Shown here: piece by piece, positions 17,396 through 45,904 of the stretch
How positions within the stretch are numbered: the first letter of the stretch is position 1
Layout: each line of letters begins with the position of its first letter
Assembly: GCF_032191835.1 (NCBI RefSeq)
Contig: NW_026800120.1
Span: 1-64,000, forward strand
Length of the DNA: 64,000 nt
Direction: 5' to 3'
Source: Heteronotia binoei
Lineage: Eukaryota
Translations under genes and position numbers: made by a program
The notes under the pieces: generated by a model
Seen by the model: only the letters and a program-made list of their open reading frames with translations
The model's database searches: none
What the model was told of the DNA's origin: nothing

Positions 17396-18285
17396 ATATT
17401 CTTAAGGTATATCTTGTGGATGGGACCTGTCACTGCGTTCTAAATGAGAAAATATGTCATTTCATGTTACAACCTGAGCAGCGGATGAAAAAGGCTGTTA
17501 ACTTTAGCAGAATGCAGCCATTATGTCAAGATATTGGGGGAGGGGCGGGGGGTTAACATTTTAGAAGTGCCAAATGTTGAGAGAAGGGGAAGTGTAGGAT
17601 GTGCATGTAACCGACTTTTGCTGAGGGGACTCAGCTTGCGTTCTGCAAGGTGACCAGTCAGGGGCCCCTGCTGGTTATTGCAGAGCTTTCTCCTTCCCAG
17701 AACAGTGCGGAGTTGTTCAGAGCCCCAGAGGGAGAAGGGCCTCTCCTTTGTGTAGGGGGAAGGGAGGCTACTGTCCCCATGGGGCTTGGTGAGCTGGGCT
17801 TTGGGATACGTCCTGGGTCAGAAGGGATGGAGGATTTCCACTCTGGAGATGCTGAAGGCAGTGCTATGGGCAGCAGAGAGCACAGCAGCCCTCAGCGCGG
17901 ATCAGAACCTGGCAATATGGGGGGCAGAGTGTGATGCAGCCGGAAAGGGCGAGAGTGCAGGAGCACCTTAGGTGGGCCTTTGCATCTCCCTTCCCCCAGT
18001 GCCCGAGTTGCCCCACAGGAGTGTGTCCGTCTTCTCCGCTGCCATGAACTGGAACCGTCCTGGCCTCTACTTAGATGTTGGGGCAGACTTTCACTCAGCA
18101 GCCCCGTGGGGAGGGGGGGACTCACTGGAGGGAAAACACAGGAGCTCTCCTATCTTAGCCGTTAAACCCTTGTTGAAAATGGCTCTTGAGGCAGTTGAAC
18201 TTTCCAGAACAGAATAACGATCTTATCAAACAGGCAGGGAGAGGTCTTGGTTTAGAGACTGCTGAGGCGAACACTTCCTCTAATA

Positions 18286-18954: not shown

Positions 18955-20585
18955 CCTTCTTCCTGGGAGGTTTTTCAACAGAGGCTGGATGGCCCTCTGA
19001 CAGTGATGAAGATCCTGTGAATTTAGGGGGAGGTGTTTGTGAGTTTCCTGCATTGTGCAGGTGGTTGGACTAGATGACCCTGGAGGTCACTTCCAGCTCT
19101 AGGATTCTATGACTGTTAGAGCGATTCCTCAGTGGAACAGGCTTTCTCCTCGGGAGGTGGTGGGCTCTCCTTCCTTGGAGGTTTTTCAGCAGAGGCTAGA
19201 TGGCCATCTGACAGCAATGAAGATCCTGTGAATTTAGGGGGAGGTGTTTGTGGGTTTCCTGCATTGTGCAGGGGGCTGGACAAGATGGCCCTGGAGGTCC
19301 CTTCCAACTCTATGAATCTATGACTGTTAGAGCAGTTCCTCAGTGGGACAGGCTTCCTCCTTGGGAGGTGGTGCGCTCTCCTTCCTTGGGGGTTTTTCAA
19401 CAGAGGCTAGATGGCCATCTGACAGCGATGAAGATCCTGTGAATTTAGGGGGAGGTGTTTGTGAGTTTCCTGCATTGTGCAGGGGGTTGGACTAAATGAC
19501 CCTGGAGGTCCCTTCCAACTCTATGATTCTATGAACTGCCTGATTGTTAGAGCGGTTCCTCAGTGGAACAGGCTTCCTCCTTGGAGGTGGTGGGCTCTCC
19601 TTCCTTGGAGGTTTTTCAACAGAGGCTGGATGGCCATCTGACAGCAATGAGGATCCTGTGAATTTAGGGGGAGGTTCCTGCATTGTGCAGGGGGTTGGAC
19701 TAAATGACCCTGGAGGTCCCTTCCAACTCTGTGATTCTATGAACTGCCTGATTGTTAGAGCGGTTCCTCAGTGGAACAGGCTTCTTCCTTGGGAGGTGGT
19801 GGGCTCTCTTTCCTTGGAGGTTTTTTAACAGAGGCTAGATGGCCATCTGACAGCAATGATGATCCTGTGAGTTTAGGGAGAGGTGTTTGTAGGTTTCCTG
19901 CATTGTGCAGGGGGTTGGACTAAATGACCCTGGAGGTTCTTTCCAGCTCTAGGATTCTAAGATTCCATGACTGTTAGAGCAATTCCTTAGTGGAACAGTT
20001 TTCCTCCTCTGGAGGTGGTGGGTTCTCCTTTGGAGGTTTTTCAACAGAGGCTACATGGCCATCTGCCAGCGATGACGATCCTATGAATTTAGGGGGAGGT
20101 GTTCGTGGGTTTCCTGCATTGTGCAGGGGGCTGGACTCGATGACCCTGGAGGTCCCTTCCAGCTCTAGGATTCTAAGATTCCATGACTGTTAGAGCGATT
20201 TCTTAATGGAACAGGCTTCCTCCTCTGGAGGTGGTGGGCTCTCCTTTGGAGGTTTTTCAACAGAGGCTACATGGCCATCTGACAGCGATGAAGATCCTAT
20301 GAATTTAGGGGGAGGTGTTTGTGGATTTCCTGCATTGTGCAGGGGGCTGGACTCGATGACCCTGGAGGTCCCTTCCAGCTCTAGGATTCTAAGATTCCAT
20401 GACTGTTAGAGCGATTCCTTAATGGAACAGGCTTCCTCCTCTGGAGGTGGTGGGCTCTCCTTTGGAGGTTTTTCAACAGAGGCTACATGGCCATCTGACA
20501 GCGATGAAGATCCTGTGAATTTAGGGGGAGGTGTTTGTGGGTTTCCTGCATTGTGCAGGGGGTGGACTCGATGACCCTGGAGGGC
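18955..20585 (+). repeat. Tandem array of ~210-bp CR1 3'-end units (~7.5 copies)
   Basis: gttagagc unit starts near 19115, 19326, 19546, 19754, 19973, 20189 and 20405; each ends ...gaggtcccttcca(a/g)ctcta(t/g)gattcta. Confidence 0.95.
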
Positions 20586-22758: not shown

Positions 22759-25700
22759 TCAAAGGGTGCTGCCCCCCCGCACTTTTGAGATGAGCCGGGT
22801 TTCCCCAGCAGTGCTTGCAGCCACGCAGTTGAAGGCACAAGAACCCAGGAACAAGCTGGCGGGCAGGCTGTTTCCAAAATACAGCTTGGTATTGGTTGCA
22901 ATGGCCTGGTATTTGACCAGTTCCAGGTAGGCTGGTGTGAGTTTCACCTGCCGAGAGAGAGGACAAGAGAAGAGGCTTCTGAAGGACCCCAGAGAGCAAG
23001 CTCCCAGGGCCCCCAAAAGGAGAGCTCTCTGTGCCTCCCCACTCCTTCCTCTCCTGGACTGCAGGATGCAAGAGATGGATGCAGCTCACCTTGTTGGAAA
23101 TGGCTGCTTGTTTAGCAGTGTAGTACTTGGCATCTGCTTTGGCCTTCTCTCTTGCTAGAAAAGCAGCATCTAAGAGAACAACATGAAGGCACTGCTAGAC
23201 AAGTCTACAACAGAGCAGTCCAGGCGGCTGGGAATCGTTGGGGGAGGGGTAAGTACAGTGCCCTTGAGCTCCCAGCCATGGCCTCAGCATGACACCATCC
23301 GGGAATCCACTGACCTGGCTACTCTTCAGGCCAAACAAAACCTGAATGAAAGGGGAGGGACGGTGGCTCAGTGGTACAGCATCTGCTTGGGAAGCAGAAG
23401 GTCCCAGGTTCCATCCCCACTGGCATCTCCAACTAAAAAGGGTCCAGGCAAATAGGTGTGAAAAGCCTCAGCTTGAGACCCTGGAGAGCCGCTGCCAGTC
23501 TGAGTAGACAAGACTGACTTTGATGGACCCAGGGGGGTCTGATTCAGTATAAGGCAGCTTCATATGAATAAGCAGATTCAGCAAGCAGAGCCCACACTAG
23601 CTGCTCTGATCTGGTGGCCAGCGGAGGCAAGGGCAGAGCTTTCTGGGGGAGGGGCTTGTGCCAAGTTCTGGAGGGGCCATGGGGGGCTAGAGGAGTCTGC
23701 CACATGTAGAGGCCTTGTTGCCTCAAGCCTCCATCACCCCTCCCACCACATGTTCTAGGTGCTCTCTGCAGGCCTGGGACATGGCCACTCCCAACCCCAG
23801 GCCTTCATAATCCAAAAAAGGCTGCAGCGGAAGCAGCTTCCAGCCACTGTGGGGCCCAAGAGCTGGACCACGAAGGCAGGCCAAGGCCTGGCCAGGAGGA
23901 TCCACTGCAGCAGCAGCAGCGAGATGGGGAGCACTTTCTCTCCCCGCCCCTTTGCTGAATGGCCCACTAAGGCTTCTCTCCTGGTTCACCTGCTTTCTCC
24001 TCCCGAGGCTTCCAGAGCCACCACACCCTGCACTCTTGATCCTGCGTGGCCAGTCTATCCACCTGGGCATCTCAAGCTCAATCAAGGAAGGCAGCGCTTC
24101 CTTCCCTGCCCCCTTCCTCTCTTCTGTTCGCTTTGGGCTGCCCGACTGGAAGCTGCCTTTAAGCAGTATCTGCCACCAGCCCCCTCGACAGGCCTTAGCG
24201 GGTCTTGCTCCCACATTCAGCCACGACCCTCCCTCGGATGCACGGCCAGAGAATCCACTCCAGCCACTGCAAATCACCTCAAGACCTTCCCGGCTCAATG
24301 ACTCCCTGGCCAAAGTGCAGCGTCATCCTTCTGGATAACTGTATTCGCTTTCCAGTCATTGCTTTCAAAAAGCCTCCTGCCCCATCTCTTCTACCCCTCA
24401 CCCTCCAAGGGGCTTCAGTGCAAGGGCCATTTCTCTTCTGCTCTGGAGTATCCTCAGAACCAGGTGAGGTGGCCTTCTGTCCATTCCACAGAGCAGGAGA
24501 TGCTGCTGCGGAAAGAACCTGAGGCCACCCAGCGGCCCTGCCACAGGGGCAGCGAGAAGGCACAGCTCTCAGGGCCAGAGATGCAGCAGAAGCACAGACT
24601 TCCAGCGCTCCCCTGTCGTCTCCCCTGCTTGCCTCGCAGTCCTCCTTTCTCAGTGCCAGTTGCTGCTCCTTGGCCTTCCTTCCCACCCCTTCTCAAAGGG
24701 AGGGTGAGGGCACATCCCCACCTGCTGGGCCCATTTGCCCCTCAACTGGCACTCCCATGTGGCTCACAGAGGATCCCCCAGAGGCCCCACCCCCCACAGC
24801 CACAAGATGCCTTTTAAGAGGTGGGCCCTAGCCTGGCTGTGGAGGCGTCTCTGCACACAGAACACTTGGCAGGCTGAGCAGCAAATCCTCCTTCCTGCGC
24901 AGAAGTGGCACCTGGGGACGAGGAGGAGAGCTGAGGGTCACTTACCTTCAAGCTCAGAAATCCGCTTGCCTGTCAACGTTTCCATGACCTTCTGCTGATA
25001 CTGAATCTTGGCCACCTGAGCCACCTTCTCTGCTTCTGCAATTAGACAGCAGCCTGTCCTGAGCAACTGCACAGCCCGCTGGGGAAACCGCAGCCCTCAC
25101 GGGGGCAGGGCAGAGCTAACCCACAGGGATCTGCTATGCAATTCAAATTCAAATATTCAAGCAATGCCACGTGATGTCCAAGCACTGGGGTTTGTCCACG
25201 TGTCCCTCTGACGTGACAGATTTGCAGCACAACACCACCCTCCCCCCCCCCCCCCCCGACATCTATAAACAGACTGCATCGGCATCTGTGCAGCAGAAAA
25301 ATTCTCCACGGGAAAAAGGACATCCCTCTTCACCCCTCCTGTCCGAAGAAGAGTTCTGGAGCCCTCAGAAGCGCACACACACACACCCCCCCCCCCGGTG
25401 ACATGTCAGTCTGGCCCAGCAAGGCCAGACAGAGGCATCCCGCCCCTCCCACCCACCCCCTCAGCAGGCCGCAGCAAGAAGCCTCATCAGCCCCTGGCCT
25501 CAGCTGCTTCCCTCCCTCTTTGTGGGCATCTGAACAGCCCCAGCCAGGGAACATCCAGCTCAGAGAGCGCCAGAGTGAAGTCAGGCTGGGTCTGCCCGGA
25601 AGGGTGGCCACTTACCTATGATTGCCTTCCTCCTCTCCGTCTCGGCCTCCTTCTCCACTACTTTCTGCTTCTCAGCAGCTATCAAGAGTTTGGTCTTTTC

Positions 25701-28700
25701 CGTTTCCCTGCAGAGCAAAACAGAAGACATTTCTCCAGCTTCCTGCCCCCAACCCCAACCCACTGGCCTAATCCCAGGGCTCCAGCCCCACTGGGCCAGA
25801 GCAGCCCATCCCCCTTTGCCCGCCAGTAGCAGCAGAGGTGGTGCCTGGGGTTGGGGTGGGGAGACAACCATCCCTGCTGCCGTTTACTGCAAGGCTACCG
25901 GCTGTCTCCGGCCTGCACTTTGCGCAGGTTTCATTCCAGTGAAATTGTCCCCTTGAGCTTCCCATGTCCTCAGGAGGCCCCTTGTGGCAAATGCCACAAC
26001 TGCCGGATGAGCTCCAGTTCTGCTGTCTTGTGGTGCAGCGGTTCAGAGCAGTGGCCTCTAATCTGGAGAACCAGCAGGTTTGATCCCCCACTCCTCCTCT
26101 GCATGCTGCCAGCTGGGTGACCTCTCAGCCCCACCCGCCTCACAGGACGTCTACTGCGGGAGAGGAAGGGAAGGAGATTGCAAGCCACTCCTCTGGATGT
26201 ACAAAACCAGCTCCTCCTCTTCTGAATAGGACTGGTCCTCATACTGACCCTGCCACGCTGCTCCCTCTGTTTGCTTCCCTCCCCTCTCCCTTGCAAGAGC
26301 TGCCCATGCATCCCTCACCTCGGCCTCCTTTCCTTTCACCCAGCTGACTCCAAAGACCACCTGTCTTTTTGATCACCTGACTGCTTTCTGACCAGCGCCC
26401 CAGGAGCCCTTGGGGGGGGGGGAACCTTACGGGAAAGCCTGTGGGAAGTCTGTGCCTGTCTCTGGCTCCAGGCCCTCTGGGAGGACCAAGGAAGCTGCTG
26501 TGGTCAGGCTACAACTTCTCACTGCTCATTCAGCAGTTGCAAGAAGCACCCACAATCCCACATTTTCAGGGCTCCAGGAGCAGCCGAACACCTGCACAAG
26601 ATGTAGTTTCACGTGGCCTTTAAGGGCACCAGAGAAGACTATTCAGTGACCCTGGCAAGTGGCCCAGCCCTACAAGGAGCACCCCATTGCAGGCCCCAGG
26701 CCCTGAGGGAGACACACTCCAGCAAGAAATACTTACACAAGTTCAAAATTTCTCCGGATGACTTCAGGGATTTTGGGCTTTGTCACCCGCACAGCCTGCA
26801 TGGAAAAAGACAGACCACTCAACCAGTTGCACCCTTGTGTGGGTGGGGGGCTCTTCTTCCCAGCCATGGGCTATTCACTCTGTTGACAAAGAACCACCCC
26901 CACCCCCAAATTCTGTAGTAGACAAAAGAAAATGTATGTTATACATTTTGAGAAAGAATAATTTTGCTTAAACAGCAGCTCACTGATTGTCATGCACTGA
27001 CCTCCCTTCCTAGAAATCTCCCAGGCTGCCTCCCCACCCTCCCACTCCCAAAGATGCTCCTTGATAACAGGAGCTGATTTCAGCCCTCTCATCTCCTCCC
27101 CCCAGCCACACCCGAGATTTCTGTGCCACAAGTAGCAACAGAAGAAAGAACTCTTGGATGCTGCCTGTCTGGCCTCCTTGCAGAAGCAATGCTCTGAAGC
27201 TAAGATAGCTAAAACCGCCCTTTCCTTTAGGCTACTGCCCTCAGATACCCAGCATTTATCCATGCCAAACTCCTACAGCAGGCAAAGAATACGAGCTGGC
27301 TGGGTACCCACCAGAACGTACGAGGGGTGGAGCTCTCAGCTCCTGCCCAAGGCCTCATTCAAGAACATTCACAGATGCAACTCCAGAAGAAGCCCTCCCT
27401 TTGCTGTCACCTGCCAGACAGAAGGCAGGAGAGAGGTGTGGGAGCAGCGGCCTCACCTGGATGGTGATCCCTGGAGCCAGGGCGTTCAGGTCCTGCTGCA
27501 GTGCTAGCTTCAGGTTGTCATCTATCTGATCTAGGAGCAGCAGACAGGAGGAAAAACAGAGTTACTACCCAGTCACCCAGCTGTGCAGGCAGCCCAGAGC
27601 CATTTCCAGCACCCTGATTTATTTCTGTCCTGCTCTTCTGTACAAAAAGGACACTCAATTCCAAAAACCTTTATTGGAATAACAAGAACACCCAAGACAG
27701 CTGACAAATGCAACCCATCCTAATGGAGTACAGTATCCAAGCAGGGTCAGACTGGCCAGGAAAAGTGAAGAAGGATCCTGCCCCCTCCAGGGAGGGAGGG
27801 AGAAGGAAGGACACAGCACATCTGCCCTCATTCGGTGGTTCAGCACATCCGCCCTCCCCTCAAAACTGTAAATCAAACCAGCTTTCAGGTTATTGTCTGA
27901 AAACTTTTTTGAGGAATTTTCCCTACAAATCAAAGTCAGGCACACAGAGAGAGAGAGAAAAATAACACCTAATATCTTCTGAGAGTTCCATAGAGAAAAG
28001 TCTGATTTGCTTGTCACAGCAATGCATTTTTATAAAAAAAAATATCAGTCTTATCGTACTCTTGGTGATTAGTCCTAAATCAAATATTGGTTCCTTGTTA
28101 TTTATGCGTTAATCATAGAATCCTAGAGTGGGAAGGGACCTCCAGGGTCATCTAGTCCAACCCCCTGCACAATGCAGGAAACTCACAAACACCTCCCCCT
28201 AAATTCACAGGATCTTCAATGCTGTCAGATGGCCATCTAGTCTCTGTTGAAAAACCTCCAAGGAAGGAGAACCCACCACCATCCAAGGAGGAAGCCTGTT
28301 CCACTGAGGAACCACTCTAACAGTCAGGAAATTCTTCCTAATGTTGAGCCGGAAACTCATCCTGAAGCATGCCCATTAACCTTCCTAGTGCAAGATAAAA
28401 AAGCCAAACGGAACTCTTAATCTCTCTTAAAAGACTATAAACAATGTTTCTGCAACTGCTTTACTTAGATGTCAAAGACAAAAGAAAACTTTTATGCAAC
28501 CAGAGTTCACCAACAGCTGAACTCACTATGAGCATTCACTACAAGAAAGAAGACGCAGTCAAGATGCTGCTGCTTACCAAAAAGTTCAATGTACACTTCC
28601 TGGAGGGTGTGGCCACTGCAAAACTGGTTGAGCTCATGGTGGATCTTGTTAAAGATGAGAGCCCTGTCATAATCGGCAGTGAAGTTCCTTACAATGTCAT

Positions 28701-31149
28701 AGACTGGAGTAGAGAGAGACCACAAGGTCAGGGAAACAGAACATGCTCCAAGCAGAACACGCTTTGTTCTGGCCCCTTGCCCCAGGCAATCTCGCCCAGG
28801 AAAGAAGTCTGAGCAGAGCCCCCCTCCAAGGGGCAGCTGAGAGGTCAGGCCATGACCCCCAAAAGTTACCAACAGAGGCCAGATTCTAGGAGACTTCTGC
28901 AAGAAGCTGACTAGGCTTTAAGGGGCAAGCCAGTGCCCTGAGCAACCTGTGCTCTCCTGCAGTCTCTTCACCTGCCCAAGCCCCATCTCCTCTACATGCA
29001 ATCAGAAGCAGGGCCCATGGAAGCCAGAGAAATTTACACTGAAGCCTTTACAAGATAACCATGGGCTCAAAGGGAATATTGAGCAACTGTTTCAATTAAG
29101 GGGCTCTGAAGAGGCCGTACCTGCATGTGGCGCCAACATGTTCACCACTTCAATCCGATCGATGTAGATCACAACACCGCCACTAGGAGGCAATGTCACC
29201 CGTCAGTGGCAGTGGAGAGATGATGTGCTCTCATTCGCTCCCATACGCACACCGCCATCAACCCCAAGTCGGTTCAGGTTGTTTGCCTGGCAGCCACTCT
29301 CCTGCTTGGGGAGGGCTTAAGCCTCACACAGGGGAAGCCCCTCTGAGGGAGCGGCTCCGCTAGTGGGTGGCCTGCCAGAGCCCACAGACAGGTGGGGGAG
29401 CCCAAAGGAGGAGGAACTGGGCAGCACCCAAACCCTGTCACAAGGAGAAGTTCTGCCCAGCAGGAAAAAGAAGAATTAAAGATTTTTATCCCGCCCTTCT
29501 CTCTGAATCAGAGTCTCAGAGCAGCTTACAATCTCCTATATCTTCTCACCCCACAATAGACACTCTGTGAGGTGGGTGGGACTGAGAAGGCTCTCAGCAG
29601 CTGCTCTTTCAAGGACAACTGTGGCAGAGCTATGGCTGACCCAAGGCCATCCCAGCAGGTGCAAGTGGAGGAGTGGGGAATCAAACCCGGTTCTCCCAGA
29701 TAAGAGAGCTCTGGCTGACCCAAGGCCATCCCAGCAGGTGCAAGTGGAGGAGTGGGGAATCCAACCCGGTTCTCCCAGATAAGAGAGCTCTGGCTGACCC
29801 AAGGCCATTCCAGCAGGTGCAAGTGGAGGAGTGGGGAATCAAACCCAGTTCTCCCAGATAAGAGAGCTCTGGCTGACCCAAGGCCATCCCAGCAGGTGCA
29901 AGTGGAGGAGTGGGGAATCAAACCCATGTCTCCCAGATAAGAGTCCACACACTTAACCGCCATTCCAAGCGACACACCTGTGTGGGCGCCCTGCTAGGAA
30001 GCTCAGTGTGACCGTCAGCACAAACAGAGAGTCAGCCTGTGGCTCAGAACACACAGAACGGCACTCAAAACGAGAGAACCCCAAGGTTTTGGGTTTTTTT
30101 TAAAGTAATGCATTGTTTGAACATATCTATTCTTCCCTCGTCCCTAGAGGTTCCAGAAAATGTGCTACAAAACCCACAGTGAACCCCTGCCCCCAGAGCA
30201 CTGTTGAGGGCTCAATGGCCCAAGTGTTTCCTGCCTTTGCACCACTGGCGGGAGGCCCAACGAAAAGGAAGGTCCTTTGGCTCTTCCTAGAGAGCAGGAA
30301 GCCCTGGGAATATGCAAAGGCAGCTCTTGCTGCCCCACAAAAGAGCGGGGTTAGTGCAGGGGCTGCTCAGGCGACAACAGAGAAATGGGCCAGAGGCTGC
30401 ACGTGCGGCACTTCCTTCCAGCAGTGGCTTCCCAGCGAAGTACAGAAAGGAGAAAGGCCGCCCAACCCAACACCGCCCCCCCCCAGGCCGCAGTCCTGTC
30501 TGGCCTCCCCCCACATCCCGGGTACCTGGTCCCGCAAGGCACGTTCTTCACCTCGTCCGTCTGCAGCGTGGTCTGCAAAGGAGGAGGGCGGAAGTCAGCG
30601 CGAGGTTTGCTCAGCCCTGGGGCAGCAAGCAGGAGGCCGGAGGAGGGGAGCCCCGGGCCGGGCCAGGCCGGGCCTGCCTCTCCCCTCCCCTCCCCTCCCC
30701 TCCCCCGCCAAGACCCACCTGCACGGCTCGCTGGGTGGTGACGAAGGGCAGCATCAGGCGGTAGCCCGGCCCGCTCAGCCGCGGCAGCAGCGCCCCGCCC
30801 CTGCCGGAGAGGAACAGACAGACAGGCAGTCAGGCAGGCCCGCCCCCCCCCCACCCCGAGGCCGCCAACCAGCAGCCAGGGACCCCAGGGGGAGGGGGGA
30901 TGAGGGGCGGCCTCGGGCGGGGAGGGCCTCCAGCAGGGCAGGCAGCCAGGCAGCCCCTCACCCCGCCTCTGGGATGGCCGGGAAGGAGGAGGAGGCGGGG
31001 GGTCCCTGCCGCCCTCACCTGTAGTAGACGGCGAGGTGTCCCTCGGGGACCTGGTGGAGGGCGGCGCCCAGCAGCACCACCAGCACCGCCCCCGAGCCCC
31101 CCACCCACCCCCCGACGCCCAGCGCCCACGCCCCCCCGCGCCCAGACAT
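22759..31149 (-). CDS. ERLIN1: ER lipid raft-associated protein 1 (SPFH family), complete, ~343 aa. 11 exons: 31149-31019, 30800-30719, 30572-30526, 29182-29121, 28703-28578, 27530-27457, 26795-26737, 25707-25616, 25035-24946, 23169-23090, 22947-22759
   Basis: [103 protein letters not shown] and IYIDR...VNML favour ERLIN1 over ERLIN2. GT-AG introns; exon lengths sum to 1032 nt. The start ATG is inferred. Confidence 0.93.
23350..23565 (+). mobile_element. tRNA-derived SINE (Squam2-like) in ERLIN1 intron 9
   Basis: A box ggtggctcagtgg, B-box-like ggttccatcc, tail ctgattcagtataaggcagcttcatatg. Confidence 0.65.
28110..28360 (-). mobile_element. CR1 3' end, single copy of the unit amplified at 18955-20585
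   Basis: tcatagaatcctagagtgggaagggacctccagggtcatctagtccaacc is the reverse complement of the array unit end. Confidence 0.85.
29466..29960 (-). mobile_element. Squam3-like SINE with four tandem 79-bp internal units, in ERLIN1 intron 3
   Basis: Units at ~29627, 29706, 29785 and 29864; normal SINE head and tail on either side. Confidence 0.9.
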
Positions 31150-32190
31150 CCTCCCCCGCCCGCCGGGGAAGAAAAGAGGAGAGGGAGGGAGGGAGGGACG
31201 GACACTTCCGGCAGGAGGACCAAGGGACCGGAAGCGACCCGCAGCCCCGCCCCCGAGCAGAGCAGGAGGCGGGGGGGGGAATGGCGGCGCCCAGCAGCAC
31301 CACCAGCACCGCCCCCGAGCCCCGCCCACGCCCTCCCCGCGCCCCGACATCCTCCCCCGCCCACCGGGGGAAGGAAGGGAAGAAAAGGAGGGACGGGCAC
31401 TTCCGGCAGGAGGACCAAGGGACCGGAAGCGACCCGCAGCCCCGCCCCCGAGCACAGCAGGAGGCGGGGGGGGGGAAATGGCGGCGCCCAGCAGCACCGC
31501 CCCCGAGCCCCACCCACACACCGCCCACGCCCTCCCCGCGCCCAGACGTCCTCCCCCGCCCACCGGGGGAAGGAAGGGAAGAAAAGGAGGGACAGGCACT
31601 TCCGGCGAGAGGACCAAGGGACCGGAAGCGACCCGCAGCCCCGCCCCCGAGCGGAGGAGGAGGCGGGGGGAAGATGGCGGCGCCCCCGCCCACCCCCGCG
31701 CCCAGACATCCTCTCCCGCCCGCGCCCGCCGGGGGAAGGAGGGGAGAAAAGAGGAGAGGGACGGACACTTCCGGCGAGAGGACCAAGGGACCGGAAGCGG
31801 AAATGACCCTCAGGAGGAGGAGGCGGGAAGATGGCGGCGCTCAGCAGCACCGCCCTCGAGCCCAGCGGGCCCGCGCCCAGACATCTGCCCACGCCAGCCA
31901 GCCCGCCCGCCGGCCGGGGGAAGAAAGGGAAGAAAAGAGAGAGGGACGGACACTTCCGGCAAGATGACCAAGGAAGCGGAAGTGACCCTCAGGAGGAGGA
32001 GGCGGGAAGATGGCGGCGCTCAGCAGCACCGCCTCCGACCGCCCACGCCAAGCCCCCCACCGCGACCCCCATCGACGCCGGCCCTCCAGCCTGGGGAAGG
32101 AGGAGGAAGGGACACTTCCGGCGGACGGACCTAAGCGGCCGGAAGCGGAAGTGACTCTGAGGAGGAGGAGGCGGGAAGATGGCGGCGCCC
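31060..32190. promoter_or_regulatory. ERLIN1/CWF19L1 bidirectional CpG-island promoter, tandemly repeated ~6 times (160-200-bp units)
   Basis: cacttccgg at 31203, 31398, 31597, 31766, 31951, 32113; atggcggcg at 31281, 31478, 31674, 31831, 32010, 32179; the island extends roughly 30600-32600. Confidence 0.9.
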
Positions 32191-35100
32191 GGCGGCGGGA
32201 GGCCCCTGAGGATGTGAGGAGGGAGGGAAGGAGGGAGGGGGCGGGGGGCCGGAGGGGGGAGCGGCGGCGGCGCCCCCTCCCTCACCCCCCCTCCGCTGTG
32301 CGTGTCCCTGGCAGGCTGGTGAGCGGCGACGCGGAAGGGCGGCTGGACTCCCTCTTCGGGCGGGTGGAGGCCGCGCAGCGCAAGACCGGCCCCTTCGACG
32401 TGAGTGGATTGGAGGGGGGGAGGGGAGGGGGCAGGGACCCCCAGGGCCGCCGCCTCCTCCTCCTCCTCGTGCTGCTTCATGGCCCTCTTTCTCCGTCCCT
32501 CCAGTTGCTCTTGTGCGTTGGGAACTTCTTCGGCTCTGCCCAAGACGCGGAATGGGAGGACTACCGGACAGGCGCCAAGAAAGGTACAGGAAGAAGCACC
32601 TTGAAGGCATCAACAGCAGGTTTAGAAGGCATCAACAGGGGTTTAGAACAGCCTTCAGCACTTGGGACATCAACCGTAACTGCCAACCTCTTGCTTTAGA
32701 CGAGCTGCCTGGAACTCTCCCACCACGTATGGATGGAGGGGCTGGGGTGGTGGTTTCCTGGCTCATTTCTCTCCCACCCTTCCCCCCACACATACACACA
32801 CACTTGTGAGGATACATTTTTCCACAGCAGAGGGAACTTTTTGCACTTCATCAAATCCCACTTGCTCAGCCTGTGCCTTTCTTTCCTTCAGCCCCTGTTC
32901 AGACATATATCTTGGGTGCCAACAATGAAGAAACTGTTCGTCATTTTCCAGATGTCAGTGGATGTGAACTAGCTGAGAACATCACTTATCTGGGTAATTC
33001 TGGAAGCTTCTTGCTGGTTTTTACCATTGTAATGGGCGATACAGCTGCAAAGCTTCCAAGTTATATTGATAGACACATCCTGGAGAAAACTCCAGTTTCC
33101 TGAGAAAATCTTGCTGCTGTGCCATTGCTTGCATTGATAAAGTCTTCCCTTTTGCAAGTAGCCTTCAGCGTTTTTGGAAGAAAGACGGTATATAAATGTT
33201 GGAAGGAAAGAGCTCCTGCAGAAATGTCCTTTTATATGTTTTGAAGAATGTGGAGCGGGGGTGGGGCTTAGGTGGAGCATTAGAGTTACTGGAGGAGTGG
33301 ACCGGCTCCAGCTGAGCCACAGTTTACTGGAGTAGACACTGTGGGTGAGTAGGATTCTGTAGGCTCAGGTCATAGTCCAGCAAACCTGAGTTAGTTTCTC
33401 CTGGGTGCAAGGAATCTTCTGGAAGCTGAAGGCAAAGAGTCCTTTGACCCCTGTGACCATTCTAGTTGGTGAGCTGCTGCCCTGTGAGAGCATTCTGGGG
33501 GAACTCCTGCCAGTGGCTCTGATATCCAGCTGGATTGTTTTATGTGTCTCTCTGCAGCTGAGTCAGAGGCCCTTTGGGGTGTGCAGATGTTGCATCTCTG
33601 TGGAGAGAGACGGCATCATTCGCAACGAGTTCTTGAGTTCAAGCTCTAGCATGAACTCTTAACATTCTGTGTTGTATGAAGGGCGCAAAGGGGTCTTCAG
33701 CGGAGCCTCTGGACTTCAGATTGCATACCTCAGTGGTGTTGAGTCCTTGCAGGAGCCAGCCCCAGCACACTGTTTCAGCTCCAAGGATGTGGCTGACCTC
33801 AAAACCTCGCTGCTGTCTACTCCGAAGTTCAAAGGCGTAGACATCTTGCTGACTTCCTGTTGGCCCAGAGCTGTGGAGAAATTTGGAAACAGTCCTGTAA
33901 GTATTCCATTTGGATCTGAACCTGAAGGGAATTGGGCTTATCCATTTTGTTGCCCTTGGTGCCTCTTGTCCAGCTGCTGGTCATTTTTGCAGCGGGATGC
34001 TTCTGGGTAGCTGGCGGCATGGAGCCTGCCTGTCTTTAAGTGACTGGCCTTGGGGTCTGTTGATCTGCCTTGTGAGAATAAGCCTTGTGTGCTTTGCTAA
34101 CAGCTGGATTCGAGTTCAGCAGCGCCTTAGAAATGAGCAAGGTTTTGGGGTAGAAGCCTTTGACTTTTGTTGCTCTCCCAAGGTCCTGTGGTCTTGAATC
34201 TTGCAGATCAACATGCCTACTCTCTGTCAGTAACTTTAGAATATCAGAGAAGCCAGGTTGGATCAGGCTAGTGGCCCACGCAGTCCGTCTCACACAGTGG
34301 CCAAAACCCAGAGGCCATCAGGAGATCCACCAGCAGGACCAGAACTCCAGAAGTCCTCCCACTGTGTCCCGCAAGCACGAAGAAGACAGAGCATCACTGC
34401 CCCAGACAGAATGTTCCATTTTTACCTTGTGTCTTTACCTCTGCTCCGTATGTTTATCCAGTCTCCTCTTGAAGCTGTCCGTGCTTGTAGCTGTCACTGC
34501 ATCCTGTAGTAAAGAATTCCATATGTTAATTACTCTTTGGGTGAAGAAATACTTCCTTTTATCTGGTCTAAGCCTCCTGCTCATTCATTTCGAGTGCCCA
34601 CAAATTCTTGTATTGTGAGAAAGGGAGAAAAGTACTTCTATCTCTTCTCTATCGCTAAGCAGTTAGCTTTTCAGTGGTTGCTGTTGGTAGGGCTGTGCGC
34701 CCATTACATTGAGAAGCAGTCACTGTGGGATCCTGGCAGCTTACCCTCTTTCATCCCCTTTACATATCACATCCTTGCATTTTCCCCTAACTTGTGCATG
34801 AACAGCAGGGTGACGTGGACACTAAGAAATGTGGTTCGGGGCTCGTGTCTCTGCTGGCTGCCAGTCTAAAGCCAAGATACCATTTCAGCGGCCTACAGAA
34901 GATCTATTATGAAAGACTTCCTTACAGGTACATAGAATTGGGCAGGTTACTTACAGTGAACTCTAAGTTGATAGGCTTCCAGGAAGTATTGTGAAGTTCA
35001 GTTGCTGTAAGTTGATGGTGTGTGCATTTGATAGCTGTTTTCAGTGGGACGTACCAGTTCTCCGTCTCTTGCTGTGGTAAACAAAAGAGTTTTCAGCATA

Positions 35101-38100
35101 AGCTCCTTAAATGAAAGGCGTTGCAGGGGAGGGGGGTGGGGGGAGAGCAAGTTCAGATGAGGAAACGAGAAGAGCCATTGCAATGAGATCCACGGGGATG
35201 TTGAAGCAAGTTGTCTTCTGTTAAAATCTTGCAGTTCTTTGTCAGAAAAGACTCAAGATGAGTCTTCTGCTTCTTTATACCCCAAAACCTGTCCTGCCTT
35301 ACTCTGCTGCACAGATGGGTGGGTTAGCATCCTGCTTCCTGGAGGATGGTTGGTTTTGTTGGAAAGAGTCCGACCAGACCTTTGGCTTGAGGGAGGCTGG
35401 TCTCAATGGAAGCTGTCGCAGAGGAGTTGCCAAAAGAGCACACCGGAGAGCCGGAAGTTTGCGGACTTCGTATTTCACGTGACCTTGTTCCTTGTGCTCA
35501 GAGGCTCCCAGCAGTCCTCCCAGTGAACTATGTGTGTGTCTTTTGCTGTTCCTTGCAGAAACCATGCAGTTCTTCAGGAGTCTGCACAGCACGTGAGCAG
35601 GTTCATAGCCCTGGCGAATGTTGGCAATGTGGATAAGAGAAAGGTGAAGGCACAGAACCCAGATTTGGGGGGTGGGTCTGTGGGAGAGCCTCTGCTTTGC
35701 GCGCAGAAGGTCCCCGGTTCAGTCTCCTGTTCAAAGGATCAAACCAGTGGGTGATGAGAAAGACCCCCCCCCCCCACCCAAGACCCTGGAGAGCTGATTC
35801 AGTGGAAGATTTCTTTCTGCTTCTGGCCCTAGCAAGTTACAGTAGCTGCTGAGATTTACATCCCCAGTATTACCAAAATGCAACGCTTTAGTCGCCTTCT
35901 GATCCCGTGTCTGTCTCTGCTCCTTCCCTCTAGTACCTCTATGCCTTCAACATCCTTCCAATGAGGTCTGTGGATCCTGCAGAACTAGTCAAGCAGCCCC
36001 AGGACGTCACTGAGAATCCGTACCGAGGGCCTGGTGGATGGGACCACAGCACCCAGCAGCAGCTGCCAGGAGCAGAGGTAGGGAGAAGCGTGCTGCATCA
36101 GATGGCCTGGCTCTGCTGATCTGGAGGAAGCGCTCGCTGCCTTCCTATGGTCCCTTGAGGCGAGCTCTCAGTGGTGATTGTTGCCCTCCTCTGAGCCCCT
36201 CCATCTTCCTGCCACCTCCCTCCAGAACTCCATGGAGAGCTGAGAAGTGGCATTTTGTGTTAACACTGGAAGTCTTCACGCCAATGCTGTGGAGTCTTCT
36301 GAGCAGAAATTCTACCTCATGAGCTACTGGCACTAAAGTTGTGAGCGAGTGATTTGGCTACTGCATAGATTAATTTGGTCTGGGACCATCATTCCTGAGC
36401 TAAGACAAAAAATGTGGGAGCTGGAGCTAGCTCACACTGACTAGGCTGCACTCCCCGTTTGCATGGCTTGGAAATACGAATGGAGCAGCGTAGATGTTTC
36501 CTGTATCTTGAGACTGCTGATTCTGCCCCCTTCCTCCGGGGCAGTTTTCCAGATCCTTCACAAAGAGAGAGAGGCCCGGAGTGAAGCCTGTAGGCAGAAC
36601 ATGCCGGAGCTCTGTCCTGTTCAGACAGGCAGTTTCGGTTTTTTCCTCATCTGTAAAAGGGGGTGGTTGTGAAATGAGCATGATGTTGCCTCCATCTGAA
36701 ATACCCTTGGAAGTAACCTTCCATCCTTGGTGTTCTGTATCTGCTTAAGATGACAGGAAGAAAGGAGTCCTTTTTTGCCTCCCCAGGAAGAACCTGCACA
36801 CCAGTTCTTCTTTGATCTGAGCAGCAAGCCCAAAGGGAAGAAGCGGCATTCAGAAGGCCAAGCCAGGCAGCAGCCCCAGACCAAGCGGCCCCCTTGCAGA
36901 CCCCGTGAGTGGGGGGGGGGAGGTGGAGGGGGCACATGCGGATGGTGCTGGGTCTTGGCCAGACGTGGGATGTGGACTGGATTTCCCTAGGCAAGGTGGA
37001 AGCTGGGGCTTTGCTGTTACAGGTGTTGTGGCTTGGCTAGACTGGCGTGAGCCTCCAGCCAGTCTTGGGGGCGGGGGGTGCTCTCTTGCTGCTGCTGCTG
37101 TTTTTTGCCCTCTAATTGCAGCTGACTTGTGGCAGCCCCCTGTGGGGCTTTCGGGGCAAGAGACCTTCAGAGGTGGGCTGCCATTGCCTGCCTCAGCGTC
37201 ACAGCCCCCCTGGCATTTCTTGGTGGTCTCCCATCCATACACAAGCCAGGGCCCACCCTGTGTTGCTTCTGAGGTCTGAGGGGCTGGACAATCCCCCAGG
37301 TCAGGGTTCTTACACCCTACTGAGAGCCAAGGGGAATGAAATAACCTTGCAAGGATGCCTGGTGCTCTGCTAGTGAGAAGTGACCACAAGCCCGATGTTC
37401 TGTCGTCTAGTAAGCCCTGTGTTCCATCAAGGAGTGAAGCCTCGTTCCATGCAGCCAGCCGTGTTCCGTGCTTGAGAGTCAGCCGCTGCCATCTGGGTGG
37501 TGTTTCCCTCTGGCAGTGGGCAAGCCGAGGGGCTTCGAGTGTCGTTCCCTGCCCTGCTCGGGGGAAATGTCTTGGCCAGCAGGGCTCTGCTGAATGTTTC
37601 CAGCTGGGCAGAGTACAGCAGGTGTCTGTAATTTGAGGAAGAGAGTCCTTGACTTGTGTAGTTGCATGTAGCCAGTGCCTAAAATTGCCGGAAGCCAGGG
37701 AAAGAAAGTAGATTCTGCTGCCTCACCTTGTTGACTGCTGCTATTTAACCTGAGCTTTGTTTCCCCTCCACTTTTCAAGCCCTGCCAACAGCCGCTTGCT
37801 GGTTTTGTCTTGCTAGCCCAGAGGTAGAGAAGCACTTGGTGGTGAGCATCGGGACACACGTAAGTATCTCTTGCTACAGGGGTGTCTTTTTAGTATGATT
37901 ATTTATTAATTAAATCGCCCCATCCCCATTAAGAACATAAGAGAAGCCATGTTGGATCAGGCCAACGGCCCATCAAGTCCAACACTCTGTGTCACACAGT
38001 GGCAAAAAATTTTATATACACACATACACTGTGGCTAATAGCCACTGATGGACCTGTGCTCCATATTTTTATCTAAACCCTTCTTGAAGGTGGCTATACT

Positions 38101-41100
38101 TGTGGCCGCCACCACCTCCTGTGGCATTCATAAATACAGTTTTAAAGTGACTCATGTTCTAATGTCCATAGAAATGTAAACAGTCCTGGCTTGCAAGGCG
38201 AGAAGTGCTTGTAGTGTAGTGTAAGCTCCTTACCTGCCAGAAGAATGGACAGCTGAGCAGCACAAGCACTTCCTACTACAAGCACGTTTGGCCTTCCACG
38301 TTTGGCCTTTGGACTCTTTACATTTCTATGGAGATTAGAATTTGAGTCACTTTGAAACTGTATTTATGTTTATGTTTGCTTATGTTTAATTCGATTTATT
38401 CCCTGCCATCCCCACCAAGGCGGGCGGGCTCAGGGCAGCTAATTTATAAATTGTTGGATTGTAATTTTGGTCACAAATAAGTTTGAGACATGGATATATA
38501 GGAGTTCCGTATTTTTGAGTAGGTGGGGGTTTTTGCTTTAGCGTGGTAGTGTATTGTTGCTGGATCTCCTTAGATGGTGTCAGTGCACAGTGAGGGCTAC
38601 TGGTGTTGCCATGGCTTTTGGGTGGGAGGGCGGGCGCGTGTGTGTGTGAGATTTTTTTCCTGGTGGGGGGGACGGGTCTCATCCTTCCCGTGGGTCTGAT
38701 CTTTCATTCCAGTGCTACCTGGCCCTGGCCAAGGGGGGCCTCTCTCCTGACCACGTCCTGGTGCTGCCTGTTGGGCACTGCCAGTCGATGGTGGAGCTGG
38801 CGTCAGAGGTGGTGGCAGAAATGGAGCTGTACAAGTCAGCGCTGAAGAAGTTTTTCAGGAGCAAAGGGAAACGATACGTGGCGTTTGAAAGGAATTACAG
38901 GAGTCAGCACCTCCAGCTGCAGGTGAGGCGGCAGGGAAGCGTGGCCCCCGTTATGTGAGGAAGGGATTCCAAAGGATCCCAGAGGCCATCCAGTCCACCA
39001 CAGGGCCAGCCTGGGGCGGGGTTCCCAACCTTTTTGGCACTGGGGACTGGTTTGGTGGAAGACAAGTTTTGGGGATGATGGTTTAGGGATGATACAGTTG
39101 TGCACTTATTTCTATTATTGCATTGTAATATATAATGAAATCATTCTATAACTCACAGCCCGGTTGCTAAGAGGCCACAGTCCACGGCGCAGGGGTTGGG
39201 CAGGCCTGGCTAGAGCATCCCCACCAAGTGCTTGTCCAGCCTCTGCTTGAAGACTGCCCGGGGGGGGGGGGGGAGCTCACCACCTCCCCAGGGGGCTGAT
39301 TCCACTGCTGAACTGCTCTTACTGTAAAAATGTATTTGTCCTGGGGAGAAAATCGGCCGGATTTAATCTTCTTGTTAAAAGGTGTCAATCCCACATTTCT
39401 CTTTGTCTACACCCCACCCCCCGCACACACACGCGCACCAGCTCCCCAGTGGGAAAACCAGCTGTCCCCCCCCCCCCCCCCGGGTTGTGTTTTCCAGTTC
39501 ATTTGAGCCGTTGCTTCCTTCCATGGGAGCTGGGCTGATGGATGCACTGTGGGAGGCCCTCCTTGGCCAGTCAGAGGAGACGGTTTCTGAGTGGCGTCAG
39601 GCCCCCACAGAGAGGAGCGCCAAGGAGAGAGGAGGCCCGAGAGCTGGCTGAGAGACCCCCCAGCCTCCCAGGCCCCCGCCTCCCGACAGCAAGCAGCAGC
39701 AGGGCTTTCCTTCTGCGTTTGTCATCATAAGTTTAAGCCTGGAGCAGAGGGGGCTGCCCCTCTGGCATGATGAGCAGCTGAGCTGAGGGGTTCCTGCCGG
39801 CCCCTGTGATGGGAGTTGCTGCCGCTGCTGCCACTTGGGGGGTGGGATTCCCGCTCCCCACTGAGAGCCTGCTCTTCCTCCCCCTCCACGTGGCGGACGT
39901 CCCCTTCCAGGTGGTTCCGGTGCCTCAGGACTGCTGCGCCACAGAAGACATCAAAGAGGCCTTCATCGTCCAGGCCGAGGAGCAGCGGCTGGAGCTGCTG
40001 GAGATCCCGGAACATTCCGCTCTCAAGCAAGTACGCAGCCACGACTGGCGCTGCCACCTGCTCCCTCCCCGCCCCCCTCGGCAGGCAGGGTGGGCCACTG
40101 GGAGGGTCTCCCACTCGCCCTGTGTGGAGCTGCCTGCGGGGTCTGCTGCAGAACTCTTCCGGCCAGTGAGGGGGCCAGACAGCCAGGAGACTCAGCCCCA
40201 GCAGCGGGTGACGCCACTGCTTGGGTAACAACCCGCTCCCATAGAGCAAGAGCAGGTTACCACCTCCTCCCCCCATCCCACCTGCATGGGGGGGTAGCCC
40301 CCACTTGAGGAGTGGTTCATCTCGAGCGAGAGCCAGTCGGGTGCAGAGGCCAGGCCGGGATGTGGGAGGTCCAGAGTCCAATCCCAGGCACACTCTCAGA
40401 CCTCACAGGGACAACACGGGGGAAAGAGGGGCAGCCACTTTGGGGGGCGCCTGGGAGCAGGGTACGGTCTCAGTGCAGTAGCTGAATGAACCTGTGTGGC
40501 TGCCCAACCCCAAGGCTCCCAGCTCTGGAGCCCCATGGATGAGCATCCCCCCCCCCACAGGCCTTGTGCGCGTCCCTCTTTCAGATCGTGCAGCCCGGAA
40601 GCCCCTATTTCTACGTGGAGCTGGATACCGGAGAGAAGCTCTTCCACCGCATCGGGAAGCATTTCCCCCTGCAGTTTGGCAGGTGCGTTTGCAGCAGTGG
40701 CCCCAGAGCTGCCATCGGAGGGCAGCAGACCCAAAGTCGCCTGCTGCTGGGGAGGGGGGACTCTGCTTGCCCCCTGGCCTGCCCATGGCTGTGGGCGAGG
40801 AGACCTGGAGCGGAGCGGCTGCCCTCCCTTCCTTTCCCTTCTGTCCAGAGGTGGTGGATGCTGGAGGGCTCTCTTGCCCTGGGGGTTTTGGGTGGGGTGT
40901 GTGGAGAGCAGGACTGAGAGCCTCTTCATGAGCGGAAGGTCAGCTGTTGCTACGGCTTCTCCTCTTCCCCTTTTCCGCCTGCAGGGAAGTTCTGGCCAGC
41001 GAGGCTGTCCTGGGGATGCCTGGCCGGGCGGACTGGAGGAGTTGCCAGCTGGGGAGAGAGGAGGAGGCCGCTGCTGCCCAAGCCTTCCGGCAGGCCTTTG

Positions 41101-41129
41101 CACCCTTTGACATCGCCCAAGAGGACTGA
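32179..41129 (+). CDS. CWF19L1: CWF19-like protein 1 (metallophosphoesterase-like plus CwfJ domains), complete, ~544 aa. 14 exons: 32179-32213, 32315-32399, 32505-32583, 32892-32993, 33682-33896, 34809-34927, 35559-35643, 35934-36077, 36787-36904, 37780-37859, 38713-38922, 39911-40030, 40585-40682, 40985-41129
   Basis: [107 protein letters not shown] introns; total 1635 nt, in frame. Confidence 0.97.
34216..34650 (-). mobile_element. CR1 LINE 3' fragment
   Basis: Reverse complement of the CR1 terminus (gagaagccaggttggatcaggc) and upstream ORF2 end. Confidence 0.75.
37930..38127 (-). mobile_element. CR1 LINE 3' fragment
   Basis: aagaacataagagaagccatgttggatcaggcc... Confidence 0.8.
38129..38368. 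mobile_element. Foldback MITE, possibly Tc1/mariner type
   Basis: ~57-bp imperfect inverted arms (ataaatacagttttaaagtgactca.../...tgagtcactttgaaactgtatttat); ta|cag...ctg|ta suggests a TA target. Confidence 0.7.
39016..39208. mobile_element. hAT-Charlie MITE resembling MER1/Charlie3-type ends
   Basis: ggttcccaacctttttggcactggggactggtttggtggaagacaa and ttatttctattattgcattgtaatatataatgaaat match the recalled consensus. Confidence 0.55.
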
Positions 41130-44709: not shown

Positions 44710-45850
44710 AGCTGCAGCCCTTCCCTTTGTCGCCCTCTCCCCTCCCTCCATCTTCAGTCTCACAGGGGAGCCACGCAGGCCAGCCAACTCAAGGGCTCTC
44801 CAAAGGCCATTCCGCGCAGGTGCAAAGTGCCCAGCGCCGCCCCGGCTGGCTCCCTCCCTCCTGTCCTTGTGGCTGTGCCCTTCAGGGGCCACATCCTGGG
44901 CTGCCCCCCCCCCTGGCGGCTCCCCGGACGGCTGCAGGCTGGAGGAGAATGCGCGGGAGCAGGTGGATGCCAGGGGATTCCGGGGGGAGGGGGGTCTCAG
45001 CCCCTCTGATTCCCATGCCCAGCAAACCTGGCAGAGCCCCGCCACAGCCGTCGAGGGGTCCTCCGCCCCGCCCGCCGACCCTTTGGGACCCTTCCCCAGC
45101 CTGCGCGGCCGAGAAGGAAGGAGGCGCGGGGGGGGGGGCAGCGGAGGCGCGCTCAGGCCAGGGACGGGAGGGGGGTTGGTGGTGCCCCGCCCCCTGCCGC
45201 GGAGGAGGAGGAGCCATCTGGCGAGGGGCGGGGCGAGGGCGGGCTGCAGTGCCCTTGGGGGCCCCCGCGAGAGGTGAGGGGCGGGGCGGGCTGCTGGTCG
45301 GAGCGGCGGAGAGCAGGTAGGGGGGCGCCTGGCCCGGGGGGCTCCCGGGGGGGGACCTCCTTCCTTCCTCCCTCCCTCCCTCCCTCCCTCCCTCGGCGCA
45401 GAGAGAGCCCCTCCCGCCGCCTGGCACAGCGGAGTCCCTGCGGGCACCTTCGGGAGCTGCGGCGAGCAGGAGCGCGGAGGTGGCGCCTTCTGCCTTCCCT
45501 GCACCGACCCTGCTGCCGGGCGAACTGGGACTCCTGGGGCAGCCGCCCAACGCTGCCCTCGCCTCGGGGGCCAGACAGGCGGGGCTCCGAGCCTCCCTTG
45601 GTGGAGATGAGCCCTCCACCCCTCCCCTCCCCTCCCCCCGCGCCATCCGGGCTTCCTTCGCAGCGGGGCCCCGGGGCCAGCGGCTGCTGCAGCACCCGTC
45701 CCTTCGCCCTCTTTGGCCGCTGCTGCGTGCTCCCTTTCGGAGCAGCCCTCCGGCCTCGTGGAGGCCGTCTCCTCTTTTGCCCCCCCCCCCCCTCGGTGGC
45801 CTTCTCCTGACTTCTGCCAGCCTCGGGGTCAAGGAGATGGGCATTTGACA
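44710..45850 (+). promoter_or_regulatory. CpG island, probable PNPLA6 promoter with a non-coding first exon ending at 45316
   Basis: Multiple GC boxes (ggggcggggc) at 45225-45290, then gagcag|gtaggg donor; the ATG-bearing PNPLA6 exon has its own acceptor at 56601, so an upstream exon is needed. Confidence 0.55.
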
Positions 45851-45904
45851 TTGTCTGGCAACCGGGATATCCATTCCAGCACCTTCCACCCTGCCCTTGA
45901 AGGT

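Follow-up and report, generated by a model that had tools for sequence, protein, structure and literature searches.

The ERLIN1/CWF19L1 locus

The window analyzed is a 64,000-nucleotide stretch of the Heteronotia binoei genome in which a tandem array lies between two head-to-head genes, ERLIN1 on the minus strand and CWF19L1 on the plus strand. The ERLIN1 exons run from 31149 to 22768 on the minus strand and the CWF19L1 exons from 32179 to 41126 on the plus strand, and the same head-to-head gene order is found in Eublepharis macularius and Paroedura picta. CWF19L1 was identified by 13 collinear exon matches to a protein with CwfJ_C_1 and CwfJ_C_2 domains (P0007), and ERLIN1 by collinear matches to gecko proteins named erlin-1 by NCBI and UniRef. 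The exons were mapped with database proteins, where each protein search used a single genomic reference and not a spliced model. The exons closest to the array are the following.

30526 to 30572, minus strand: ERLIN1 exon 3, from protein matches
30719 to 30800, minus strand: ERLIN1 exon 2, from protein matches
31019 to 31149, minus strand: coding part of ERLIN1 exon 1, with the start codon at 31149-31147 and a GT donor at 31018-31017
32179 to 32213, plus strand: coding part of CWF19L1 exon 1, with a GT donor at 32214
32315 to 32399, plus strand: CWF19L1 exon 2, from sequence reading and protein matches
32505 to 32583, plus strand: CWF19L1 exon 3, from sequence reading and protein matches

ERLIN1 exon 1 was searched within a longer reference without stop codons, which returned erlin-1 matches, and the gecko erlin-1 proteins P0037 and P0038 gave 86-88% identity at 31012-31083 in tblastn. 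The 5' 90 bp of this exon (31060-31149) make up the left part of the first array unit. On the other side, the CWF19L1 start codon falls within a YY1-type match at 32176-32186, and the N-terminus agrees with that of a Sphaerodactylus protein (P0036, MAAPSGRRPLR), of a squamate contig (L001) and of both gecko loci. P0005, a protein which looks mammalian and is possibly primate, was used solely in one Pfam scan. The Rfam search found no snoRNA in CWF19L1, and its sole match was a tRNA-like element at 23357-23418.

Structure of the array

Between the two genes lie six head-to-tail units spanning 31060-32180, with the unit number taken from one Heteronotia binoei assembly.

31060 to 31282: U1, 223 bp, with the functional ERLIN1 start, two ETS sites (inverted at 31203, direct at 31228) and a GC box; its right end lacks the full YY1 match
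31283 to 31479: U2, 197 bp, 94% identical to U1
31480 to 31675: U3, 196 bp, with the ERLIN1 start remnant mutated to ACG and a right end that restores AAGATGGCGGC
31676 to 31832: U4, 157 bp, with the ERLIN1 coding remnant mostly deleted and the ancestral-type GGAAGCGGAAATG present
31833 to 32011: U5, 179 bp, beginning with GGCGGCGCTC and carrying the double ETS site GGAAGCGGAAGTG
32012 to 32180: U6, 169 bp, adjoining CWF19L1, with the ERLIN1 start remnant lost
31060 to 31069 and 32181 to 32190: left-hand and right-hand copies of the 10-bp microhomology arm GGCGGCGCCC

All six units begin with GGCGGCGC, which recurs after the last unit, contain CACTTCCGG and terminate in the start of ATGGCGGCG. 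The unit alignment (A1) spans every base of 31060-32180, so that no foreign sequence separates the units. Tandem Repeats Finder returned two calls, one at 31108-31685 (period 199, 2.9 copies, 88% matches, score 847) and one at 31723-32188 (period 179, 2.6 copies, 78%, score 434), which are two halves of a single array. The motif counts agree with this. CACTTCCGG occurs at 31203, 31398, 31597, 31766, 31951 and 32113 within the array, and eight times in the whole window against 0.41 expected; ATGGCGGCG is found six times against 0.12 expected, always within the array; and AAGATGGCGGC is found four times against 0.04 expected, at the last four junctions. The longer form GGCGGCGCCC lies at 31060, 31283, 31480, 31676 and 32181, and is replaced by GGCGGCGCTC at the starts of U5 and U6.

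These data bear out the proposal of an earlier note, made from the sequence alone, that a two-way promoter is tandemly repeated in about six copies, with the YY1-type AAGATGGCGGC in the distal units and with unit boundaries that coincide with a 10-bp microhomology. The anatomy of the units was also as claimed, except that their size is 157-223 bp rather than 160-200 bp. The plus-oriented CCGGAAG expected in each unit is present in five of six, U5 having GGAAGCGGAAGTG instead, and U1, U2, U4 and U5 retain an intact remnant of the ERLIN1 start codon, which U3 and U6 do not. A gradual change from one end to the other had been suggested as well, and the identity between neighboring units does fall along the array (0.94, 0.94, 0.84, 0.88 and 0.79), and is 0.73 between the two end units, U1 and U6. 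The array lies in a CpG island as defined by GC >0.55 and CpG observed/expected >0.6 over >200 bp, with GC of 0.69-0.77 and CpG observed/expected of 0.65-0.83 in each unit, and GC is 0.64-0.77 over about 30400-32600.

The true locus might have one unit, or a different number of units, inflated by an assembler at a GC-rich repeat (GC about 75%), and an exact look-up of the open reading frame at 32010-32696, which spans U6, found no other assembly; but the units lie 6-27% apart with many indels and a coherent gradient and give a structured tree, whereas near-identical copies are the norm for false duplications, and such an artefact is very improbable.

The ETS and junction motifs show no change across the six units, whereas the coding remnants decay. 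The invariant columns form four clusters, namely CACTTCCGGC, GGAAGCG, AGGAGGCGGG and the junction, and shuffling the columns 20,000 times reached the longest invariant run in 7 cases. The ETS core has a mean pairwise identity of 0.82, the ERLIN1 coding remnant one of 0.46. The predicted GABP/ETS consensus occurs six times inverted and five times direct in the array. The invariance of the motifs could in part stem from gene conversion or from anchoring of the alignment instead of selection.

Single-unit relatives and origin of the array

The orthologous loci compared were those of the squamate contig L001 (Logan), Eublepharis macularius (L002) and Paroedura picta (L003); the Sphaerodactylus sequence, which has no contig on record, was compared as protein only. 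The prediction that other squamates carry a single unit held in all three loci, where the array is absent. Their start codons are 123, 95 and 72 bp apart, compared to 1,029 bp in Heteronotia binoei, and collapsing the array gives a single-unit spacer of 131 bp, close to the ~130 bp that had been anticipated. In the tree, all six units group in a single clade (100/99) separate from the three orthologs, with (U1,U2) supported at 99/98 and the group with U3 added at 100/99. The double ETS site and AAGATGG are common to U4-U6 and the orthologs, and among all units it is U6 whose core most resembles the single unit of other geckos. A derived core, with loss of the second ETS site and gain of CCCCGCCCC, is common to U1-U3. 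Judged by these sequence relationships, the youngest units are U1-U3, on the ERLIN1 side.

The 9-mer arm GGCGGCGCC occurs exactly twice in each of the three orthologs, 140-197 bp apart. Because both copies sit at the array-boundary positions in all three relatives, the array most likely originated by microhomology-mediated tandem duplication (MTD) followed by expansion, a mechanism published for such repeats (10.64898/2026.02.28.708716; PMC13167724). The ancestor very probably had ERLIN1 and CWF19L1 head to head around one CpG-island promoter of the ETS/ETS/YY1 type, with about 70-125 bp between the start codons. By chance, this promoter would have been bracketed by a 9-10-bp direct repeat (GGCGGCGCC[C]), its left arm encoding, in antisense, Gly-Ala-Ala of the ERLIN1 signal anchor and its right arm encoding Ala-Ala-Pro directly after the CWF19L1 start. 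Misalignment of the arms probably then duplicated the intervening 140-200 bp, and unequal exchange or slippage probably brought the array to six units, the latest rounds probably taking place at the ERLIN1 side (U1-U3). The outgroups show roughly 77-79% identity in one shared CWF19L1 stretch, and since all three seem about equally distant, the age of the first duplication is poorly bounded.

Upstream start codons and predicted productive copies

The array contains seven upstream start codons on the plus strand and four on the minus strand, while none is found in any single-copy spacer. Those of the inner units have A at -3 and G at +4. Two of the upstream start codons open frames that run across a gene's own start in a different frame, the one at 32010 across that of CWF19L1 and the one at 31709 across that of ERLIN1. 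The ERLIN1-type start codon of U2 at 31350 shares the frame of the real start and would give a 67-codon extension. Because the array adds these upstream start codons, only the outermost copy would provide each gene with a clean leader. Any transcript initiated in an inner unit would have strong upstream start codons in its leader, and the extra copies are therefore not expected to be equivalent productive start sites. From the scanning model of translation we infer that the productive copies are U1 only for ERLIN1 and U6 only for CWF19L1. The inner four copies retain the ETS and junction motifs and appear to stay in an unmethylated-looking CpG island; most likely they serve as spacer and as additional putative sites for ETS factors and YY1, with little or no net effect. 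Taken together, the locus is likely a lineage-specific promoter minisatellite of MTD origin, with productive outer copies and inner copies of small or no net effect.

It is possible, though unlikely, that the duplication instead split the shared promoter into two gene-specific, diverged ones with the inner copies as spacer. ERLIN1 would then be served by U1, with an inverted ETS site, one ETS site and a GC box and without the full YY1 match, and CWF19L1 by U6, with the ancestral inverted ETS site, the double ETS site and YY1. The increase in start-to-start distance from 72-123 bp to 1,029 bp is consistent with such a division of labor, as is the derived core of U1-U3 next to the ancestral core of U4-U6. 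The proximal promoter copies, now about 1 kb apart and different in predicted sites, fit uncoupling as well as coupling. However, neutral drift may explain the core differences between U1 and U6, and the inverted ETS site, which is thought to act both ways, is kept in both outer copies. That whole-promoter tandem duplication is a route to uncoupling co-regulated head-to-head genes, in which outer copies would diverge and inner copies would become ETS-bound spacer, is a doubtful proposal. If it is true, Heteronotia binoei would be a natural intermediate with the single-unit relatives as controls.

A coupled expression dial, as envisaged in the earlier note, appears improbable. Unit number would have to vary among individuals, with each unit adding ETS/YY1 and start sites so that ERLIN1 and CWF19L1 expression move together. 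Every unit has intact ETS and junction motifs, and GABP sites drive the bidirectional activity of human promoters (PMC2077898). On the other hand, inner-unit transcripts would carry the upstream start codons in the A(-3)/G(+4) context described above, and YY1 sites that coincide with translation starts acted mainly as repressive elements in reporter assays (PMC3491394). The 6-27% divergence also speaks against a dial, because an array with such diverged units is not of the fast-turnover type with identical units. The array is not accepted as a proven copy-number dial.

Comparison with known systems

The array is real and well explained, and is another case of the promoter minisatellite, an already-known kind of element. 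As in other MTD-derived tandem repeats, a single-copy segment lies between short direct repeats, the junctions fall exactly at the arm, and one copy would have become two before expansion (10.64898/2026.02.28.708716; PMC13167724). The gecko case differs in that the arm is long (9-10 bp) and kept in place by the coding constraint of two genes, and in that the duplication took in the whole intergenic promoter together with both start codons. Promoters are enriched for tandem arrays, and these frequently show an association with expression (10.1101/2020.12.16.423078; PMC8096271). Like promoter minisatellites and VNTRs, the array, with a period of 157-223 bp, sits within a promoter CpG island and multiplies predicted factor sites, but its units are old and diverged, and it is known here from the sequence of one assembly.

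The locus also resembles the ETS/GABP and YY1 class of bidirectional CpG-island promoters, with head-to-head genes, the putative site CCGGAAGTG in both orientations (PMC2077898) and a YY1-type AAGATGGCGGC on a start codon (PMC3491394), but the promoter is sixfold and 1,029 bp separate the two start codons. The macrosatellite DXZ4 similarly has a bidirectional promoter in each unit of a tandem array (PMC3218863). However, DXZ4 units are 3 kb, occur in tens of copies, are non-protein-coding and do not serve flanking genes, whereas the gecko units measure about 0.2 kb each and the array they form has a protein-coding gene on either side. In the Xenopus rDNA spacer, tandem promoter copies and promoter-derived enhancer repeats lie upstream of the working copy, where they act as enhancers or factor sinks and not as productive start sites. 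That system is transcribed by Pol I in one direction, while the gecko locus is presumably a bidirectional Pol II promoter. In a non-exhaustive literature search, no report was found in which an entire Pol II bidirectional promoter has been amplified between the two genes that it separates.

The locus provides an unusually legible view of how a minisatellite is born, as the 10-base microhomology that probably seeded it can still be seen in three relatives with one copy, where coding constraint in two genes holds it in place. It is also a ready-made test of the number of ETS/YY1 bidirectional promoter copies that can be tolerated or used by the cell, with single-unit geckos as controls. For annotation, caution is advised, as the array holds decoy start codons, five of the CWF19L1 type and three of the ERLIN1 type, and its stop-free open reading frames of up to 513 codons are not genes. 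Seven further minisatellite arrays are found in the same window.

Structure of the repeated promoter

The six-unit promoter repeat between ERLIN1 and CWF19L1, which lie head to head, was confirmed. In the assembly, window positions 31060-32180 consist of six head-to-tail units (U1 adjoining ERLIN1, U6 adjoining CWF19L1), which Tandem Repeats Finder splits into two halves, one with period 199, 2.9 copies and score 847, the other with period 179, 2.6 copies and score 434.

Units of the array and coding exons flanking it
ERLIN1 exon 3, 30572-30526, minus strand
ERLIN1 exon 2, 30800-30719, minus strand
ERLIN1 exon 1 coding, 31149-31019, minus strand, reads MSGRGG...EGHLAVYYR, then GT donor
U1, start 31060, 223 bp
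U2, start 31283, 197 bp
U3, start 31480, 196 bp
U4, start 31676, 157 bp
U5, start 31833, 179 bp
U6, start 32012, 169 bp
CWF19L1 exon 1 coding, 32179-32213, plus strand, 11 residues, then GT donor

The earlier note described a gradual change along the units and a chimeric anatomy within each. The change is real, since adjacent units are 94, 94, 84, 88 and 79% identical along the array while U1 and U6 share 73%. The anatomy is borne out by the alignment of the units (A1), where the left portion of U2-U6 corresponds to the ERLIN1 coding start of U1 read in antisense, the middle of each unit carries ETS sites in inverted and direct orientation, and the CWF19L1 start forms its right end. U2, U4 and U5 still have an intact remnant of the ERLIN1 start codon; in U3 it is mutated, and U6 has lost it. 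CCGGAAG occurs in plus orientation in five of the six units. Motif counts far exceed the expectation from shuffled sequence over the whole window: CACTTCCGG and ATGGCGGCG each occur six times in the array (expected 0.41 and 0.12), AAGATGGCGGC four times, at the last four junctions (0.04), and GGCGGCGCCC five times, at the starts of units 1-4 and at 32181 (0.04). A sixth copy of GGCGGCGCCC at 32266-32275, in CWF19L1 intron 1 and 85 bp past the array, could serve as an additional misalignment arm.

The columns that do not vary among the units fall into four blocks, namely CACTTCCGGC, GGAAGCG, AGGAGGCGGG and the junction. Of 20,000 column shuffles, 7 gave an invariant run at least as long as the longest one observed, and none placed as many as 35 columns in invariant runs of 7 or more. 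The ETS core has a mean pairwise identity of 0.82, versus 0.46 for the coding remnant. This suggests that the predicted factor sites of the inner copies are kept while the coding remnants decay, with alignment anchoring and gene conversion as caveats. GABP sites confer bidirectional activity (PMC2077898), and YY1 sites on translational start sites are a known class, mostly repressive in reporter tests (PMC3491394).

Every unit has a GC content of 0.69-0.77 and a CpG observed/expected ratio of 0.65-0.83, and one CpG island (about 30400-32600) encloses the array. T is scarce (5-12 per unit), and its near absence explains the stop-free ORFs over the array and its flanks at 30351-31892 (minus, 513 codons), 30900-31967 (plus, 355 codons) and 30830-31786 (minus, 318 codons). 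They are not genes, a search returned no relatives for them, and gene callers that rely on ORFs could be misled by them.

Single-unit orthologs and flanking genes

Orthologous loci
L001, 2.2-kb Logan contig, run SRR13336341
L002, Eublepharis macularius, chromosome record CM053278.1
L003, Paroedura picta, chromosome record CM110977.1

The earlier prediction of a single unit in other squamates held in all three loci: each has ERLIN1 and CWF19L1 in head-to-head order and a single unit, and no tandem array was found. The spacer from start codon to start codon is 123 bp in L001, 95 bp in L002 and 72 bp in L003; in the window it is 1,029 bp, or 131 bp with the array collapsed to one unit. All four share a core of inverted ACTTCCGG, then CGGAAGCGGAAG(T/C)G, then AAGATGGCGGCG, and the Paroedura and Eublepharis loci also align with the window over long stretches at intron level.

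Protein searches used one genomic reference each, with exons unjoined. The search restricted to ERLIN1 exon 1 returned two full-length proteins named erlin-1 by NCBI and UniRef, P0037 (Eublepharis macularius) and P0038 (Paroedura picta), both with a Band_7 domain and both collinear with window positions 31083 to 22768 (tblastn). We assign the gene to ERLIN1, not ERLIN2, on these source names and the CWF19L1 neighbourhood. The read-through of CWF19L1 exon 2, intron and exon 3 found P0007 (553 residues, CwfJ_C_1 and CwfJ_C_2 domains), which maps to 13 collinear exons at 32298-41126. The CWF19L1 start codon is supported by a spliced Sphaerodactylus fragment (P0036), as this opens with MAAPSGRRPLR.

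In the window (22768-41126) as in the geckos of L002 and L003, the two genes are direct head-to-head neighbours; in L002 and L003 a gamma-tubulin-complex (GCP) gene lies past the ERLIN1 3' end. CHUK is absent between ERLIN1 and CWF19L1, unlike in the human cluster, whose order is ERLIN1-CHUK-CWF19L1. The working ERLIN1 exon 1 contains an internal 21-23-bp repeat (31087-31145, minus). Due to this repeat, its peptide has 44 residues, versus 35-40 in P0038, P0037 and L001, and the ERLIN1 signal anchor is itself lengthening through slippage.

Upstream start codons

On the plus strand, the array carries seven start codons upstream of that of CWF19L1, four of them set in AAGATGG. That at 31831 begins an upstream ORF of 107 codons, and that at 32010 lies in a different reading frame and overlaps the true start. 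Four lie upstream of the ERLIN1 start on the minus strand, including 31709, out of frame and overlapping the true start, and 31350, in frame, which would extend ERLIN1 by 67 residues. No start codons were found on either strand of the single-copy spacers in L001-L003. Under the established scanning model of translation, these upstream start codons would leave a clean leader only to CWF19L1 transcripts that begin in U6 and to ERLIN1 transcripts that begin in U1. The proposal that copy number may act as a coupled dial, setting the expression of both genes together, is weakened by the start codons within the array.

Origin of the array

The 9-mer GGCGGCGCC occurs exactly twice in each ortholog, at the two sites that correspond to the array boundaries of the window, with a spacing of 197 bp (L001), 175 bp (L002) or 140 bp (L003). 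One of these arms encodes, in antisense, Gly-Ala-Ala of the ERLIN1 anchor, and the other Ala-Ala-Pro after the CWF19L1 start. Microhomology-mediated tandem duplication is modelled as one duplication between arms followed by expansion (10.64898/2026.02.28.708716; PMC13167724). The arms that flank the single unit in the orthologs are the substrate that this model needs, and one duplication between them, then expansion, most likely gave rise to the array.

In a maximum-likelihood tree of the six units and L001-L003, the units form one clade (100/99) separate from the three orthologs. Within it, U1 and U2 group together (99/98) and are joined by U3 (100/99). U1-U3 share a derived core in which the second ETS site is lost and CCCCGCCCC gained, while the double ETS and AAGATGG of the ancestral state persist in U4-U6. 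This pattern places the latest rounds of duplication on the ERLIN1 side. That the array is an assembly artefact is strongly argued against by the divergence of the units, with their indel pattern and tree structure. The structural and evolutionary reading is supported by a prediction that was able to fail, yet was upheld. The locus is a very clean case of a known kind, a promoter minisatellite that most likely arose through microhomology-mediated duplication, and it is unusual in that each unit comprises an entire bidirectional promoter together with the start codons of the two genes.

Other features of the window

A second CpG-island-like peak (45001-46000, GC 0.71) lies downstream of CWF19L1, and the repeat search found no tandem array scoring at least 200 in it. 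In an ERLIN1 intron, a tRNA-like match (23357-23418, plus) scores 35.3 bits, slightly over the gathering score, and probably represents the head of a tRNA-derived SINE, not a tRNA gene. The window is generally prone to minisatellite arrays, with seven further ones of periods 60-266 bp covering about 12% of it (43-246, 15422-17404, 18966-20583, 29626-29943, 48541-48688, 56007-56497 and 61914-63994). A 79-bp family is present at 29626-29943 (4 copies) and, in the opposite orientation, at 61914-63994 (26 copies); part of the Eublepharis locus (L002, 30304-30387) matches it.
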